53,181 nucleotides of DNA from NCBI GenBank assembly GCA_025201805.1, contig MU619261.1:8437-61617 (forward strand). Direction: 5' to 3'. Source of the DNA: Parasitella parasitica NRRL 2501 (taxonomy: Eukaryota; Fungi; Mucoromycota). The notes beneath the pieces are model-generated. The model was given only the letters and a program-made list of their open reading frames with translations. It ran no database searches and had not been told where the DNA came from. Position 1 is the stretch's first letter. Each line of letters starts with the position of its first letter. The translations under genes and the position numbers were made by a program. Shown here in pieces: positions 8,078-16,099 of this stretch.

Positions 8078-9818
8078 CTATGGGTGTAAAAGTGCATTTT
8101 CTGCCGCCGTTTCAACAGGCCTGGTTTGAGGCCTTACTCCAGGTTGCTTGTGTTGACTGTAAGCACCTACAGCGTTGTAAGAAGAGGCAGTGTATTTGGT
8201 AACGATCTTTTTGAGAGCGTATGGCAGCGTCTTCCAAGGAAACACTTTGACGTCCTTTTCAATGTTGCGAGGTTTGGGATTAGGGAAGCTCATGATGAGC
8301 TTAAAGAAGTCAGCACTTTCAGCTTTGCATTTGCTAACATTCAAAGGACGGAACCCTTCCAAATTTCTGCGGATGCGATTCTTTTCTTCCACACTGAATT
8401 TGATATCCATCAGACATTCAAGCAGATAAATACAGTCGACAGAGGTAATGAAAAAATCATTGCGCTCCATCCAATATATACACGAAATTACAATGTTGCC
8501 GCTGTTGGAGGCATGTTCTCCTTGCGGAACTGGCTGGAAAGTAGCAGTGATTTTGTTACCGTGTTCTTCACGCCAAAATTGGACGAGACGACGGCGATAA
8601 CCCCATTCTTCAGAAGCCCAGCTTTTAGCCATAGCATCTAAATCGCCCATGATGTCAAAGTTGGCAAGACTGACGAGGCCGGGATAAGGTTGATAATTGA
8701 CTGAAGAAATGGTAGGTACATGCGTAGCTGGTTTGAATCCAAACACAGAAGTGCGGTTATTGTGGATGTGATGTTGACGAGATCTACCAGTAGAGTGAAC
8801 GGCATTGGCGATAGAGGTATAGACATATGGCATGGGCGATATGGATGCAGAAGGGGCAGCAGAAGCAGTAGTAACAACTTGTTTTAATCCACCAGTAAGC
8901 GTAATGGTAAACCTTCCATCACCGATTGAAGAGAAAAGGCCAAGACCAGCTGAGTTGCTATGCTGTTGTTGGGGCCGTGCGTGCTGGGCATATTCTGGAA
9001 TGAGAAAAATGTGTGAATTAATAACGATAAACTATAAAGAGCTCCAGAAATACTTTACTGTCAACAAATATGCCAGGTTGACCTTGAGTAGCTGCATGCT
9101 GCTGCTGATAAGCAACAGTGTAGGGCTGGTAACCTAATCCGTTGTACGGTGATGAGTTTCCAGCGGCAGGTGAATAGAAGCTTTGATAAGCAGTGATTGA
9201 CGAATTCAGAAAGTCATTGTTATCTGCCGTCGAAGATGAGAAATTAGATGAGATATGCATTGAGCCTCAACATACTTACCTTTGGGCTGATAAGAACAGG
9301 TATCCTGGTGGTAAGTTTGGCCAGTAGCAGAGATGTTAAGAAGAGAAACACCAGGACTACGTATTTCGTTCACCCCATCGAAATTAAAATCTGCTACAAT
9401 CCATGTTTTTGTCACCATGTTCGCATCCAAGAAGCAAATGCTGATAGGCACATTGGGTGTGGAATGATGAGTCTGCTGGAATGGAGGCACAGTCGCTACC
9501 AAAGAGGTAATGTCATGGGCCTGCAATTGTTTAGTATCCACCATCAGACTGTTGAATGCTAATTTGGCAGGAATATGAGGAGGCATTCTTTGAACAACAA
9601 CAGTAACAATTGTTCCTTCATTGCCTCGAGTAGGAGATAGCTCAATTAATTTGGGTCCTTGCAGTACACTGCTTTCACTCTTTTGCAGCAGTAGCTGCTG
9701 CTGATCTTCTGCCACAGATGGCCATTTCTTCTGAGGCTCCAGGCCAGAAGCTAAAAGGACAGTGGGAACTAATCAAAAAGCTGATAAGTATACTATTGAT
9801 ACTAGTTGATGCGTTCAT
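8078..9818 (-). CDS. Medusa (MedA/ACON-3)-like developmental regulator with N-terminal IPT/TIG-like domain
   Basis: Conserved ISCIYW..FITSVDCIYLLE..FSVEEKNRIRRNLEGF..PKPRNIEKDVKVFPW. ATG 9818; introns ~9802-9751, 9279-9224 and ~9056-8995. A further intron may extend the 3' end to ~7840 or lower. Confidence 0.8.
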
Positions 9819-10681: not shown

Positions 10682-11179
10682 TTACCTTCAAAAGGAGATT
10701 GTTGAGGACCAGCGATAATCACATCGAAATAGCGTAAATTATCTTCGTGAGGCGTTGCGCTGATGCCAGGAGCAGGGTCAGCTAATAAACGCTCGCTTTC
10801 CTATTTTATTGACACATTCACGTAATACATATAAGCACAAACAACTCTGAACCCCTGTATAACAAATAATGGATTCTTACTTTAACAATTCTTTTGGGAA
10901 GAGAAGACATTTACGGTACTCGATTAAAGTAGTGGGAATAAAGAAAAAAAGAGAGAGGAAAAGGAACAATACGACGAGCCAGTTACGTAAAGTCGTTCCA
11001 AAGTCAAGAGCGGTGCTTAAAAGCGGGCAATAATTTTTTTCAGAGGACGGTTTTTTAGTGGTATCTGGAGTTAGAATGACCAATGGAATTGCTATATATT
11101 CAACCTTCGAAGCGTATTCCGAAAGATATTCAATCTCCCAGGCTTAAGTATTTAATTTAAGAAAGCGTATTTGGAAATA

Positions 11180-11367
11180 CAGTGTTTCTACTTTAAATTC
11201 AGACGATGTTAATTTTTTTCTGGACGAATTGAAATTAATATTTAGACAAATAGCTTACCTATTTTGGAAACCAAAATAATTATTTCCAGATAAAAAAGAA
11301 ATTATTTTAGACGAATCAGATTTAATTATTGGACCATTATCTTACCTATTGTGGAAAAAGTAAAAAT
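11180..11367 (+). repeat. Left terminal inverted repeat (with internal ~87-bp tandem subrepeats extending to ~11410)
   Basis: cagtgtttctactttaaattcagacgatg...ggaaaaagtaaaaat is the reverse complement of 14796-14983; CTTACCTATT(T/G)TGGAAA recurs at 11254 and 11341. Confidence 0.95.
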
Positions 11368-11942
11368 TATTGTACAGATAAAAAAGGAAATTAGTTTGGA
11401 CAAATCAAAAGCTAATTTCTTTATATCAATGGATATTTTCATCAATAATCATTGTAAATTATTAGACTTAATTCGTGGATTATCTGAAGCAAAATTAGTA
11501 AATATTCATATGCTGTTTCATACGTGCTCCAACTAATAGTTGGATCCAAACTCTATTCTACTGTTGAGATAGATATATAATAAATAAAACAAAACGAAAT
11601 GAAAAGCCAGTAAATTCCAATAATCTTGTTCAATTACAAAAGCTTCTATTCAAACAGTCTGATGTGCTAGACATTGTTGTTTTCGAGATGTTTAATAAAA
11701 GACAAGCTGCTTCTTTGCTTAAGATAAACCAATATGGAAAACTGCCTTTATGAGCCCACGTGGTATGTAGACGAAGCCTTTTCTACTTTGGTGATGAGGA
11801 TAATCAATAGTAAATTGTTTTGATTTTGTCAATAAATCAGTCTTTGTAGTTTGAACTAAAGTTTCATCGGTCCGTCGAATTTCTAAAAGAAGACCTAGAA
11901 TATCTTTCAACATTTCTTTTCTCATCTACATTAATAAAAGTT

Positions 11943-14625
11943 ATGAAACGCAAACACGAAGACGAACAATCTGATGATCCAGAAAAAAAGATTTTAAAGA
12001 ATAAGTATCAAACGCGTACCTTACAAAAGTGTGTGTTTCTTACATTGTTTAGGTGCAGACCTGGTTAACCAAGAAATATCTACTTTAACATCATTTACTC
12101 CTTCTCATCATATCGCTTCTACTCATACTGATTCTACTGAGATTGCTTCTATTCATATTGCTTCTACTGATCTTAATCCTACTCATATTGTTTCATCTCA
12201 TACCGGCACCAATTCACCTAGTGATATGTCATCTTCTTCCAGTACCACTCCTATCATATCATAGAAAATTCAAAAGAAAATTGATAAGAGTCGTGCCTTA
12301 CAAGAGTTCAGGCTGCAACAAAAATCGGACAAACCAAAGCTGTGCCCCTCCTGCAAACAAGATACCCACGCACGGTCCACGAGCAATTTATGCCCCAATA
12401 AAAAGAAGAAAGAGACCAAGTTTGAGGCGGATGAGTTTCACTTAAAAACACTTGCAAGAATCAACTATTCGCAAAAAATCTGGCTCAAGTAGTAAAATAT
12501 ACTAATATGATTATTCATGTTGGTTCTCTTTTTGTAAACTTTGTGTTCCTGAAACTGCTTGGTAATGGCCAAGCGATACCTGTAATAGAGCAAAATATAT
12601 TCGCTTCCATGTTCGCCCTCATCACTGGTAATGGTAAAAAAGTGCCAAAATACTTGAAAGAATATTTTAATGACTTTTGCGATTTGACATCATTGGATCG
12701 TGAAAAAATTAAAGGGATTGAGTATTCCAGCCTCCTCAATATTGCGGCTAAACAATATGAAACCTTAACCAGAAATTACATACATGATACGCATGAAAGA
12801 AGATCAATAATGTACTTTTTGAAAACGATGTCAGATAAAAACTCAAACACTTACCGCAAAAATCTTCCGGTTGCCTCAAGGAAGGCTTTAGCCTATTACA
12901 TTTATCATAAAAAGCAAGGTTCGAGCCCAACATGGCCGTCGAATGTTCAAAATAGCCCAGAAAACATTGAGACTACAGAGAAATTACTTACCTTATGGTC
13001 AACGTATCAACCAGATACTTGGGACACGAAACCACTCTATTGCGATTCAGATACGCTCTACTCAAAACCTCATCTATTCTTCAAATGGGTTTATTTTCTT
13101 TCGGAAGAAGTCCACAAGAAAGTTGATATTATGGAAATTCAATTCATTCAAACTTTGAGCAGAAAGCGATTCCAATCTTTACAAGAACAAGTTCTGCAGT
13201 CGATTAACTCAAATGAGACGTTTGTATCAGGGAGAAAATTGTCCTTACTCACTGTACAGCAGATTTCAATTATCCAGCACTTTATAGATACCGTCAAAGC
13301 ACGGATTGAAGATGGAACATTTTTCCCGGCCAAATATACTGATCCTAGAGGTTATCGCTTTTTCACAATCGCTCATGTTTATACTATACAGAGCAAAGCA
13401 ATACAAATAGACGCCCAAGCACTGTGGAGGTTGGTTAAACAATCCGACGTACCATGGTATCGGTCAGGCAAAAAGACAGAAACCGAGCTAACAGAAGCCT
13501 ATCATAATCTTTTCCGTTTTTCTAAGCTTGGATTTCGAACAAGAGAAAGTCTGTCGACGGGCAAAAAACGTTTCAAGTAAGTTTCTTTGATTTTGTTGAG
13601 AAATAGCACTGACCTTGTATTAGTAATGTGATTACCACAGATGGCTATTCAGTTTGTTTTCATTTTATTCGTGCTGTAAAGAAGAAAAACGAAGGCTATG
13701 TTGAAAAGCAACCCTCAGACTTTATTAATGATATTCAACTTGGCTGCCAGATTTTTGCTATCGATCCAGGAATTCGTGATATTACAACAGCTGTCGACCA
13801 ATTAGGAAGAGAAAGAACAACAAGCTTAAAAGAGTACTACCACCTTTGTGGCTTTAATGTTGCTAGCACACAAAGAGAGCAACATAAGAAACAGCACATG
13901 AACGAATATCAGAAAATTTCCACTTAAAGCTCATTCAAGACAACTAATTTAGAAGATTTTGTAAAAGCATGTAAAGAACGATTTGATCTATACGATGATA
14001 TCAAAAAATATTATGACAGCGATGATCGGTAAGCGCTCAACATTAAATTTATTTACCTTTTACTAATACGTACGACTCTAGTTCCTCCAAGCTTAAGTTC
14101 AAATGTTACATAAAAAAACAAAAATGCATAGAAGAAATCTGCCGACGACTTACATATGGAAGCGCTAAATACGGTGAAAAGTCAAGAATGACAGAAAAGA
14201 AACAAAAAACTAGTTATATTCCACCTACTCCGATTGATCATGATATCAAACCTCGTAAAACAATTCTCGCCCTAGGAAATGCGATGTTCAATGGGAGTCT
14301 TCGAGGGAATAAACCAGCACCAGTAAGACGTATCAAGGAATCATTGAGGAAGCGCTGTGGGGAGACGTTAGATATATGCTTGATAGACGAGTACCTAACA
14401 AGCCAAGTTTGCAACATCTGTAAAGAACGCAATTTGGAAAATGTTACAACGGCCAAGTCAGTGCGAAGAGTACATGCCGTATTGCAGTATCAGCAAAACA
14501 CTTGTAATACGGTATGGAATCGCGACATAATGGCTGCAAATAACATATTGGACATCTTTCTCTTCGCTGTATTCAATAACAACGAGCGTCCAGACATATT
14601 TAAGCGACACACCTCACCCGTATGA
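11943..14625 (+). pseudogene. Fanzor1 (eukaryotic TnpB-like RuvC RNA-guided endonuclease), intron-containing, disrupted
   Basis: Probable start MKRKHEDE (11943). CCHC knuckle CPSC-x4-H-x7-C (12343-12393). ITTDGYSVCF; RuvC-I AIDPG (D 13763); ILALGN; IDEYLTSQVC (E 14389); Zn finger CNIC..YQQNTC; RuvC-III WNRDIMAANNI (D 14524). Introns 13577-13623 and 14029-14081 restore frame. Lesions: TAG 12262-12264, frameshift ~12438, TAA 13925-13927. Confidence 0.9.
12109..12198 (+). repeat. Six imperfect 15-bp tandem repeats encoding a 5-aa HIAST-type repeat in the Fanzor N-terminus
   Basis: catatcgcttctact/catactgattctact/gagattgcttctatt/catattgcttctact/gatcttaatcctact/catattgtttcatct. Confidence 0.75.
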
Positions 14626-15003
14626 TTGATATAACTCTCTCATACTCCTTACAGATGTAAGTATATATACATTCTAAACTTCAGTCAATATCCTAACCAT
14701 TATTTTCTTTTCACCCAAGCTTTTCTGCTTTTCTAAGGTAAATTCATGATCATACTATAATACCATCAAAAACTAACTTAAATTGTCTAATTTCCATTTT
14801 TACTTTTTCCACAATAGGTAAGTTAATGGTCCAATAATTAACTCTGATTCGTCTAAAATAATTTCTTTTTTATCTGAAAATAATTATTTTGGTTTCCAAA
14901 ATAGGTAAGCTACTTGTCTAAATATTAGTTTCAATTCGTCCAGAAAAAAATTAACATCGTCTGAATTTAAAGTAGAAAAACCGTAAACTAGTGACTTCCA
15001 AAT
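14560..15003 (+). ncRNA. Predicted omegaRNA locus (scaffold at element right end, guide in flanking DNA); boundaries approximate
   Basis: Position inferred from established TnpB/Fanzor architecture; no covariance model was run. Confidence 0.45.
14796..14983 (-). repeat. Right terminal inverted repeat
   Basis: Reverse complement matches 11180-11367; ends ...gaatttaaagtagaaaaaccg followed by TA. Confidence 0.95.
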
Positions 15004-16099
15004 GATACGTTCACAAATGGAATATGGACTAGCAATCTGTGCCTTGAATCAAACAAATATAAAGCAGCTCGAGGCGGGTCAAAATGACTGTGTACGTAAA
15101 CTGTATGGGGGATCTCGAACATCTTCAACGAAAGTGATGTTGCGTATGGCCAATCAGCCCTCAATGAAAGATAGATCAATAATTTTGCAAGCTAAATACA
15201 TACGTCGAGCACTACAACTACCAGAGGATACACTGTTACAAAAGCTACTACCGCATATCCAAACATCTGCCAGTCATTCTCAATGGTACAAATTAATCTC
15301 CAATCCTCTCTGGCAAAAATGTGAACCAGTGTTGGACAGATTAGACCGACGTACCTTTAACACCCTGAAGCGAGAATTCCTCCAGGATAGTTATGCCACT
15401 CTCTGCAATGGTCCGAATAGCCAAATGATTTCCACTTGCCGTCCAACTTTGGTGGTTGATCCTATTCTATGGCTACCAATGACACGTATGGAGCGTAGTC
15501 AGGTACTTCGATGGCGTCTTGGCTGGCTTCCAGGAGGCAAACCACGCCCTTGCCCTTTCCACCCGACAACTAATCTCTCTCGTGCTCACGTTACTGACTG
15601 TCTGCAGATACATCGCCGACTTCAGTTGCCTGAATCTATCCAAGACTCTCTTTCTTTCCTGCTTAACTTACTGCCACTAAAAAAGCCCACAAATGCTCAA
15701 TACAGCGCTTCCTGGGCATTCCGTTGGCCTGCAATCTGCTTGATCCTATTCGAATTAGATCATATTTTCCACAATGAAGACGTTCCTCCGGCTCCTCCTC
15801 ATATCGGTACTAGTTTGGTAGAATGGTTGCATAGGTAAAAGCTGCTAGTGTTTCTGACCTGTTTCTGGATTTTTTCTTTTTATTTCTCCTCTTTTATACT
15901 CTTTCATTTCAACTTATATTTGTTTCAATTTATAAGTTCTTACCTCTTCCATACTTTTTTCGTTTTCCCTCTTGACTCTTCAGAGGGTTTTTTCTTTCCT
16001 TCCACTTGGCGAACTGGTCCGGGCAATGCAGTTATTCCAACTATTGTGCTCATTATGACCATTTTTATTTTCCTTTTTATTTAATAAAATTTCTCATTT
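14995..16099 (+). mobile_element. 5'-truncated non-LTR retrotransposon (LINE-like) insertion with 16-bp TSD
   Basis: AACCGTAAACTAGTGA at 14979-14994 and 16100-16115. ORF 15002..15838 begins in an RT thumb-like region (IRSQMEYGL..QLEAGQNDCVRKLYG) and has a C-terminal Cys/His motif (RWRLGWLPGG..CPFH..H..DC). T-rich 3' UTR with AATAAA. Confidence 0.85.

Follow-up and report, generated by a model that had tools for sequence, protein, structure and literature searches.

A dead copy of a young TA-flanked Fanzor1 element, very probably of the Tc1/mariner type, in Parasitella parasitica

Transposable elements of the Mucorales that carry a Fanzor1 gene and have TA target-site duplications on either side were described by Bao and Jurka in 2013 (Additional file 1; PMC3627910). 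In the table of that work ROr-1, ROr-2, and MCi-1 are listed as Mariner, while ROr-3 (with 133-bp repeats) and SPu-1 stand without a superfamily; its main text deals with elements that carry Fanzor alone and have Mariner ends and TA duplications. Published target-adjacent motifs of the encoded nucleases are CATA for SpuFz1 (PMC10432273) and ATN for PpFz1 (PMC11423790), and according to Jiang et al. the motif matches the insertion site in some cases. What Fanzor does naturally for cut-and-paste transposons is under discussion (PMC10432273, PMC10530073). Here, we describe an element with a Fanzor1 gene in a stretch of 53,181 nucleotides from Parasitella parasitica NRRL 2501 (contig MU619261.1, positions 8,437 to 61,617 of the forward strand), referred to as the window. 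The element represents a new family of this kind, known since 2013, and its host is a species from which Fanzor structures are available.

As read from the sequence, the whole element extends from window position 11178 to 14985 and comprises 3,808 bp including the TA on both sides. Its left edge consists of TA (11178 to 11179) followed by CAGTG and its right edge of AACCG followed by TA (14984 to 14985), exactly the boundaries given in a preliminary description of this DNA. A repeat search delimited two inverted arms (11178 to 11367 and 14796 to 14985) of 190 nt each with the TA, which are 96% complementary. Without the TA, the terminal inverted repeats (TIRs; 11180 to 11367 and 14796 to 14983) are 188 bp long and differ at exactly seven positions (11181, 11184, 11235, 11250, 11286, 11321, and 11340), matching the length and the count proposed before. 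Each TIR contains two copies of a direct-repeat unit of approximately 85 nt with the core CTTACCTATTNTGGAAA, which in a motif search of the readable genome was almost confined to the family of the window element. Note that the siblings of this element have readable ends and mostly unreadable (N) interiors, and that negative results for the genome apply to its readable part. A chance origin of the element is excluded by a 188-bp repeat of 96% identity together with the occurrence of the same ends at about ten other loci. Inward from the left TIR follow a non-coding leader (11368 to 11942, plus strand), a candidate promoter or 5′ untranslated region in which no open reading frame has a family match and for which a contig of the public run X1 spans positions 11318 to 11960, then the nuclease gene, and finally a 3′ tail from the stop codon to the right TIR (14626 to 14795, plus strand), the presumed scaffold region of an omegaRNA. 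Outside the Fanzor gene, the open reading frame list and Pfam revealed no coding potential, no family match, and no transposase. The claim that the nuclease gene is the sole cargo thus held, as did that of a non-autonomous element, since no transposase is present inside it or inside the readable siblings.

The element resembles ROr-3 of Rhizopus oryzae and SPu-1 of Spizellomyces punctatus, to which it was compared by published description, in being multi-copy and in possessing TA duplications, inverted ends, and introns. It differs from them in species and protein family, ROr-3 and SPu-1 encoding 720 and 633 amino acids (aa) compared with 849 codons here, and its ends are longer than those of ROr-3 (188 versus 133 bp) and contain internal direct repeats. 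With ROr-1, ROr-2, and MCi-1 it shares the TA duplication and the host order, Mucorales, and the terminus of ROr-1 likewise begins with CAGTG. However, ROr-1 and MCi-1 were aligned with Mariner transposases (PMC3627910), and those of the three that encode a transposase could be autonomous, whereas the window element and its readable siblings are devoid of one.

Judged by its sequence and by structure models, the gene is a Fanzor1, i.e., a eukaryotic relative of TnpB and Cas12 with a RuvC D-E-D site and a TNB zinc finger. Protein searches were run with single exon pieces of this copy, the exons being left unjoined, and not with a mended or consensus protein. Exon 4 matched the Pfam family PF07282 (Cas12f1-like TNB) with 28.5 bits at a cut-off of 26.3, and in a phmmer search of the PDB its sole credible matches were Guillardia theta Fanzor1 (GtFz1; E value of 4e-4) and SpuFz1 (E value of 0.23), with both of which the columns of the RuvC-II Glu, the CxxC, and the WNRD motif line up. 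No Pfam match and no PDB sequence match was obtained with the other pieces of the window gene; PDB sequence searches with the N-terminal piece, exon 3, and the relative P0033 gave no match, and the ESM Atlas yielded no usable one. An exhaustive phmmer search with exon 4 retrieved 686 relatives. P0033, a relative of 863 aa, is collinear with the window gene: positions 12438 to 13575 correspond to its residues 201 to 542, exon 3 to residues 544 to 634 (40% identity), and exon 4 to residues 681 to 862. Among 29 full-length relatives, the columns of the RuvC residues D, E, and D and of four Cys are nearly invariant, with the triad conserved to at least 90%; in the window gene the triad D...E...D is present in order, with a C4 zinc finger between RuvC-II and RuvC-III. 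A search for homologues of the N-terminal half retrieved sequences from Mucorales only, specifically Parasitella, Rhizopus microsporus, Mucor flavus, and Cokeromyces.

The structure predicted for the window's own 379-aa piece (12438 to 13575) had a pLDDT (predicted local distance difference test) value of 82. In a Foldseek search with this model, the top seven matches were SpuFz, PpFz, and GtFz structures with probabilities of 0.99 to 1.00, and all remaining matches were below 0.1. The AlphaFold model of P0033, with a pLDDT of 68 and a confident core, matched SpuFz (1.6e-16), PpFz (1.3e-13), and GtFz (7.5e-13), followed after a wide gap by Cas12 (about 1e-6), TnpB (8e-5), and Fanzor2 (1e-3). 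The models are thus nearer to the Fanzor1 fold (WED/REC/RuvC/TNB) than to TnpB, Fanzor2, or Cas12, so that the identity proposed in the preliminary description was borne out by both the profile and the structure searches, with PF07282 above its cut-off and Fanzor1 folds ranking first. The best structural match, SpuFz1 (8GKH; PMC10432273), is also similar in that its CATA motif overlaps the TA duplication and in that its omegaRNA derives from the right end of the element, but it shares only about 14% sequence identity, comprises 633 aa, lies between 33-bp repeats, and has no long N-terminal extension. PpFz1 (9CF0 and 9CF1; PMC11423790), the RuvC insertion of which binds cyclophilin, is a Fanzor1 from P. 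parasitica itself, belongs to the top fold matches, and has a motif, ATN, that is compatible with the A-TA flank described below; yet it shows no detectable sequence match to the window pieces, and the window gene therefore represents another lineage. TnpB of the IS200/IS605 element ISDra2 has the same RuvC and zinc-finger core, but it is prokaryotic, is borne by a single-strand HUH transposon that lacks both inverted repeats and duplications, and gave a fold match of 8e-5 as opposed to 1e-16.

The exon structure was derived with the aid of one public run (X1), available in the form of contigs. A 2,606-nt contig covers positions 12059 to 14615, skips 13577 to 13623 and 14029 to 14081, and joins 12000 to 12059 upstream; as three short introns are removed, it must originate from RNA. 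All four exons lie on the plus strand. Exon 1 (11943 to 12000) contains the ATG and a basic KRKH stretch (11946 to 11957) and is separated by intron 1 (12001 to 12058), defined by the RNA joint and by sibling alignment, from exon 2 (12059 to 13576), which encodes a disordered N-terminus rich in Ser, Thr, and His, a CxxC-H-C knuckle, and the REC/WED half of the protein. Intron 2 (13577 to 13623; 47 nt) and intron 3 (14029 to 14081; 53 nt), both with GT..AG ends and both absent from the RNA contig, enclose exon 3 (13624 to 14028) with the RuvC-I motif AIDPG (13757 to 13771). Exon 4 (14082 to 14622, stop codon 14623 to 14625) contains the RuvC-II motif DEYLTS (14386 to 14403), the TNB zinc finger, and the RuvC-III motif WNRD (14515 to 14526), the two halves of the finger being CNIC (14410 to 14421) and Y-x4-C (14482 to 14505). 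Besides KRKH, the stretch KKKKETK (12400 to 12420) resembles a nuclear localisation signal. With 25 nt restored, the intact frame consists of four exons and 849 codons. The RNA contig contains these 25 nt and reads AAG and TTA where the window copy has stop codons, and none of the 27 exon substitutions listed (among the 40 of 49 differences that were listed over the whole stretch) creates a stop. The family of the window element is therefore expressed, sister copies being transcribed and correctly spliced, as evident from a contig that has all three introns removed and is free of the lesions of the window copy. A model in which intron 1 had only 24 nt and an A-run near 12475 contained a 1-bp frameshift was refuted by the RNA contig and the siblings, which instead show the intron at 12001 to 12058 and a 25-bp deletion. 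The knuckle of exon 2 lies in the N-terminal extension between basic stretches and has the form C-x2-C-x4-H-x7-C (12343 to 12396); for it, Pfam gave weak zinc-knuckle and zinc-ribbon hints (E values of 0.08 to 0.18).

The window copy is dead; it carries five lesions in the gene and a mutated right tip. Sibling alignment showed that the intron 1 donor has changed from GT to AT at 12001, the siblings reading GTAAGT. A TAG stop is located at 12262 to 12264 and a TAA stop at 13925 to 13927, where siblings and RNA have AAG and TTA, respectively, and a private 25-bp deletion after 12436, recognised against the RNA contig and the siblings, shifts the frame. The third Cys of the zinc finger is replaced by Tyr at 14488 to 14490, a change common to the copy on contig C46, whereas most siblings retain C-x4-C. 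The right tip reads ACCG in place of the ACTG of the siblings. These lesions are either private to the window copy or common to few siblings, and an intact reading frame is not present in it. Of the spliced open reading frame originally reported, the motifs AIDPG, DEYLTS, and WNRD in their plus-strand frames and the three introns proved real, but the frame is closed in this copy by the two stops, the deletion, and the mutated donor; likewise, the C-terminal zinc finger is there, but with a Tyr as its third Cys. The gene is hence a pseudogene of the Fanzor1 family rather than a non-member, and the window copy by itself is an ordinary relic.

The 32.8-Mb genome of P. parasitica contains about ten copies of the element. 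Copies with 94 to 98% identity are located on contigs C2, C4, C8, C35, C46, C77, C104, and C188, and a fragment is present on C158. The three complete siblings, which lie on C188, C46, and C8 and range over lengths of 3,581, 3,719, and 3,770 bp, have the ends TA/CAGTTTTTCTAC...GTAGAAAAACTG/TA, and the termini common to the siblings can be summarized as TA/CAGT...ACTG/TA, the left tip reading CAGTT or CAGTG. Other copies with the same termini and the TA, the search for which had been suggested along with the preliminary description, thus exist. A 28-nt terminus occurred 17 times, exclusively in the window family and its relatives, and not once in a reversed control. The copy on C4 has a truncated right end and an internal deletion in its left repeat. 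At the level of its copies, the family is young. Six of the seven mismatches between the left and right TIR are private to the window copy, as the arms of the siblings agree at these positions; this corresponds to approximately 1.6% private change and indicates a recent insertion. The dating from low TIR divergence was therefore sound, even though the copy is dead. The accompanying expectation that intact siblings may exist is backed by the spliced RNA contig without these stops or the deletion.

Related ends, with 80 to 89% identity over the outer 70 to 140 nt, flank other Fanzor genes on C77, C44, C33, and C39. The locus on C77 (L037; 44030 to 49380) is a 5.3-kb element whose C-terminal exon is 31% identical to that of the window gene and which contains a nested insertion resembling a reverse transcriptase; that on C44 (L038; 71032 to 72150) is a 1.1-kb deletion derivative that has kept both ends and a TNB remnant, and further Fanzor1 copies lie between related ends on C33 (L042) and C39 (L041). 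A second Fanzor family comprises at least 19 copies (L045 to L063, e.g., C169:53356-53534) with a C-terminal exon approximately 47% identical to that of the window gene. Its copy-to-copy similarity ends about 155 nt past the stop codon without a trace of the window TIR, which indicates that a related nuclease rides on different ends. Overall, the genome shows at least 41 TNB matches. As a separate observation, the sibling on C35 (L031; C35:140078-142480) is interrupted by a 288-bp insert flanked by an 8-bp overlap of element positions 882 to 889, and further in it contains a Tc1-like DDE_3 match on the opposite strand.

TA is present at both ends of the window element and of three siblings (C188, C46, and C8). 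It also occurs at five additional single ends, namely the left ends on C35, C77, and C4 and the right ends on C104 and C2. The TA flanks, the CAGT tips, and the long TIRs with internal direct repeats are marks of the Tc1/mariner superfamily, and most likely the element is moved by a Tc1-like transposase that acts in trans from another locus. Taken together, the locus is very probably a dead copy of a non-autonomous, TA-flanked element of the Tc1/mariner type with Fanzor1 as its sole gene, which was mobilised in trans and in which, by analogy, Fanzor would aid retention. Several observations weigh against this interpretation. No paralogous empty site was found with either flank, so that the reading of the TA as duplicated target, and not as a portion of the end, draws on the family pattern. 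No transposase-bearing element with the 28-nt terminus or the internal repeat motif was detected in the readable genome, and eleven Tc3-type transposase loci showed no TIR similarity in BLAST searches. The full-length fold evidence stems from P0033, a relative with 25 to 40% identity, and not from the window copy; the flank motif described below rests on seven sites and could reflect a preference of the transposase; and the 3′ tail has no Rfam match and folds no better than shuffled sequences (z = -0.22). The search for a cognate transposase by TIR, recommended earlier, was likewise negative in the readable genome, including a TIR BLAST against the C35 locus and the window. The mobilisation by a mariner transposase that had been proposed draws on the TA flanks, on the CAGT termini, and on TIRs built of repeats within a repeat; a transposase-bearing partner was not found in the readable genome.

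The left flanks provide a further hint. In all seven readable left flanks (GGAAA, CAAAA, TAAAA, CAAAA, GTGAA, ATAAA, and AAAAA), AA immediately precedes the TA, while the mirror image, TT after the right TA, occurs in none of the six readable right flanks. With a frequency of A of 0.315 (the genome has 63% A+T), AA at seven of seven sites would be expected by chance with a probability of about 1e-7. In the window, the candidate motif is the AAA at 11175 to 11177, which together with the TA reads A-A-A-T-A. This one-sided A-A-TA would fit a Fanzor target-adjacent motif, an assignment that is suggestive only, given the small sample, and that draws on the left side, where motifs of Fanzor and TnpB lie, and on the A-TA type of published Fanzor1 motifs. 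A competing explanation, which we regard as possible though rather unlikely, is that the mobilising transposase has a one-sided preference for target or orientation, which the AA would mirror, or that the AA is an accident of sampling. Tc1/mariner elements prefer A/T-rich TA sites, the genome is rich in A+T, and the readable flanks number just seven on the left and six on the right. On the other hand, a symmetric dimer should exhibit a palindromic preference, yet TT is absent on the right; the chance probability is as low as stated, and side and type of the motif are as reported for Fanzor1 (PMC10432273, PMC11423790).

It is improbable that the element is a member of another superfamily than Tc1/mariner, or that its TA belongs to the terminal repeat and is no duplication. 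Such a possibility draws on the failure to find either a cognate transposase or an empty site, but it has to contend with a TA at every readable end and with CAGT termini and long TIRs with internal repeats, which are classic Tc1-like features. Moreover, among the mucoralean Fanzor elements that have TA duplications, some (ROr-1, ROr-2, and MCi-1) code for a Mariner transposase, and the genome contains at least 171 DDE_3 matches, none of which is linked to the terminus or the repeat of the family. Spread without any transposase, by means of guided Fanzor cuts and copying to new positions, is more improbable still: although a partner transposase was not found in the readable genome and none is located within the repeats of the Spu-1 element either (Saito et al.; PMC10432273), each copy lies in unrelated flanking DNA, which is not expected from guide-dependent homing, and long, well-kept TIRs with internal repeats point to transposase binding. 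Across the genome, many pairs of identical DDE_3 (Tc1-like) matches are found in inverted orientation 4 to 8 kb apart, e.g., at C46:167897/175900, C128:47419/51283, C25:91988/96190, and C29:17151/23961.

For the Tc1/mariner-type element mobilised in trans, a mode of action can be proposed by analogy. For Fanzor1 of other elements, Yoon et al. reported guide RNAs that extend approximately 15 nt beyond the duplication, with repeat and duplication forming part of the scaffold (PMC10711439). By this analogy, the 3′ tail and the right end of the window element would be transcribed into an omegaRNA, the guide of which would correspond to the DNA just past the right TA. In the window copy, the guide would begin at 14986, with a repeat resembling a long interspersed nuclear element (LINE) starting 11 nt on, at 14997. 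The complex of Fanzor and omegaRNA would then cut a matching unoccupied site beside the left-flank motif, here A-A-TA, and cutting might favour retention of the element or its restoration by copying. The working model thereby parallels that for ISDra2 TnpB, in which persistence is aided by a right-flank guide together with a left-flank motif. The window copy itself is incapable of any of these steps. The family nevertheless appears useful as material, being young, transcribed, and spliced, with a one-sided motif and with divergent Fanzor lineages on related ends. With insertion sites that can be read, a nuclease that is expressed, and a motif open to testing, it could serve to examine whether persistence of the element is aided by the nuclease. 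For genome editing, the family would contribute a further divergent Fanzor1 that, at about 850 aa, is not compact.

The 3′ tail begins with a 6-bp hairpin directly after the stop codon and is covered by X1 contigs from 14627 to 14786; contigs cannot show RNA ends. Motif location revealed four consecutive intron-like units in the tail and the right TIR (14657 to 14719, 14738 to 14817, 14818 to 14904, and 14905 to 14976), with donors at 14657, 14738, 14818, and 14905, branch-like YTAAC motifs at 14693, 14773, 14838, and 14951, and acceptors ending at 14719, 14817, 14904, and 14976. The last two units correspond to the internal repeats of the right TIR, which on the plus strand read AG/GTAAG at 14818 and 14905, simply the reverse of the internal repeat core, and the final AG (14975 to 14976) lies 8 nt from the tip of the element. 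In one X1 contig, position 14656 is followed immediately by the sequence of 14720 to 14737, where the contig stops. This supports splicing of the first unit; for the other three, the contigs of this run provide no such support. It is conceivable, if doubtful, that in this group of elements the right TIR doubles as one or more spliceosomal introns, its AG/GTAAG repeats forming the last two units, and that A-A-TA is a nuclease motif kept by selection for Fanzor-assisted retention. If the TIR were indeed an intron, splicing would remove the 188-bp repeat and place the scaffold that follows the stop codon no more than 8 nt from the flank-derived guide.

Two apparent splice joints in the tail, 14786 followed by GATCAATGG and 14899 followed by TTTAAAGTAAAAAAACGG, turned out to be plain genomic sequence of the sibling on C4 and were discarded. 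Similarly, a conserved block after the stop codon in the relatives on C33, C39, and C44, considered as covarying hairpins, is the coding C-terminus of those proteins. A single low-depth contig skips positions 14645 to 14697 (53 nt) with CT..AC ends, corresponding to either a minus-strand GT..AG intron or a deletion variant.

Regarding the surroundings of the element, its left flank (11059 to 11177) represents one arm, with 84% identity, of a palindromic repeat of about 120 nt that is complete at C48:83122-83320. The Fanzor element is located at about the centre of this palindrome, and the left flank of the sibling on C2 also starts with the same repeat. On the right side, the LINE-like fragment, of the type without long terminal repeats, spans 14997 to 15838 and beyond, starting 11 bp past the right TA, and includes a 278-aa open reading frame without a Pfam match. 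Copies with 99 to 100% identity to it are present on C51 and C2, the latter approximately 590 bp downstream of the Fanzor sibling on that contig. A host gene lies about 2.3 kb upstream of the element on the minus strand (8078 to 8833); its 251-aa open reading frame matches DUF7082 with an E value of 2.7e-68.

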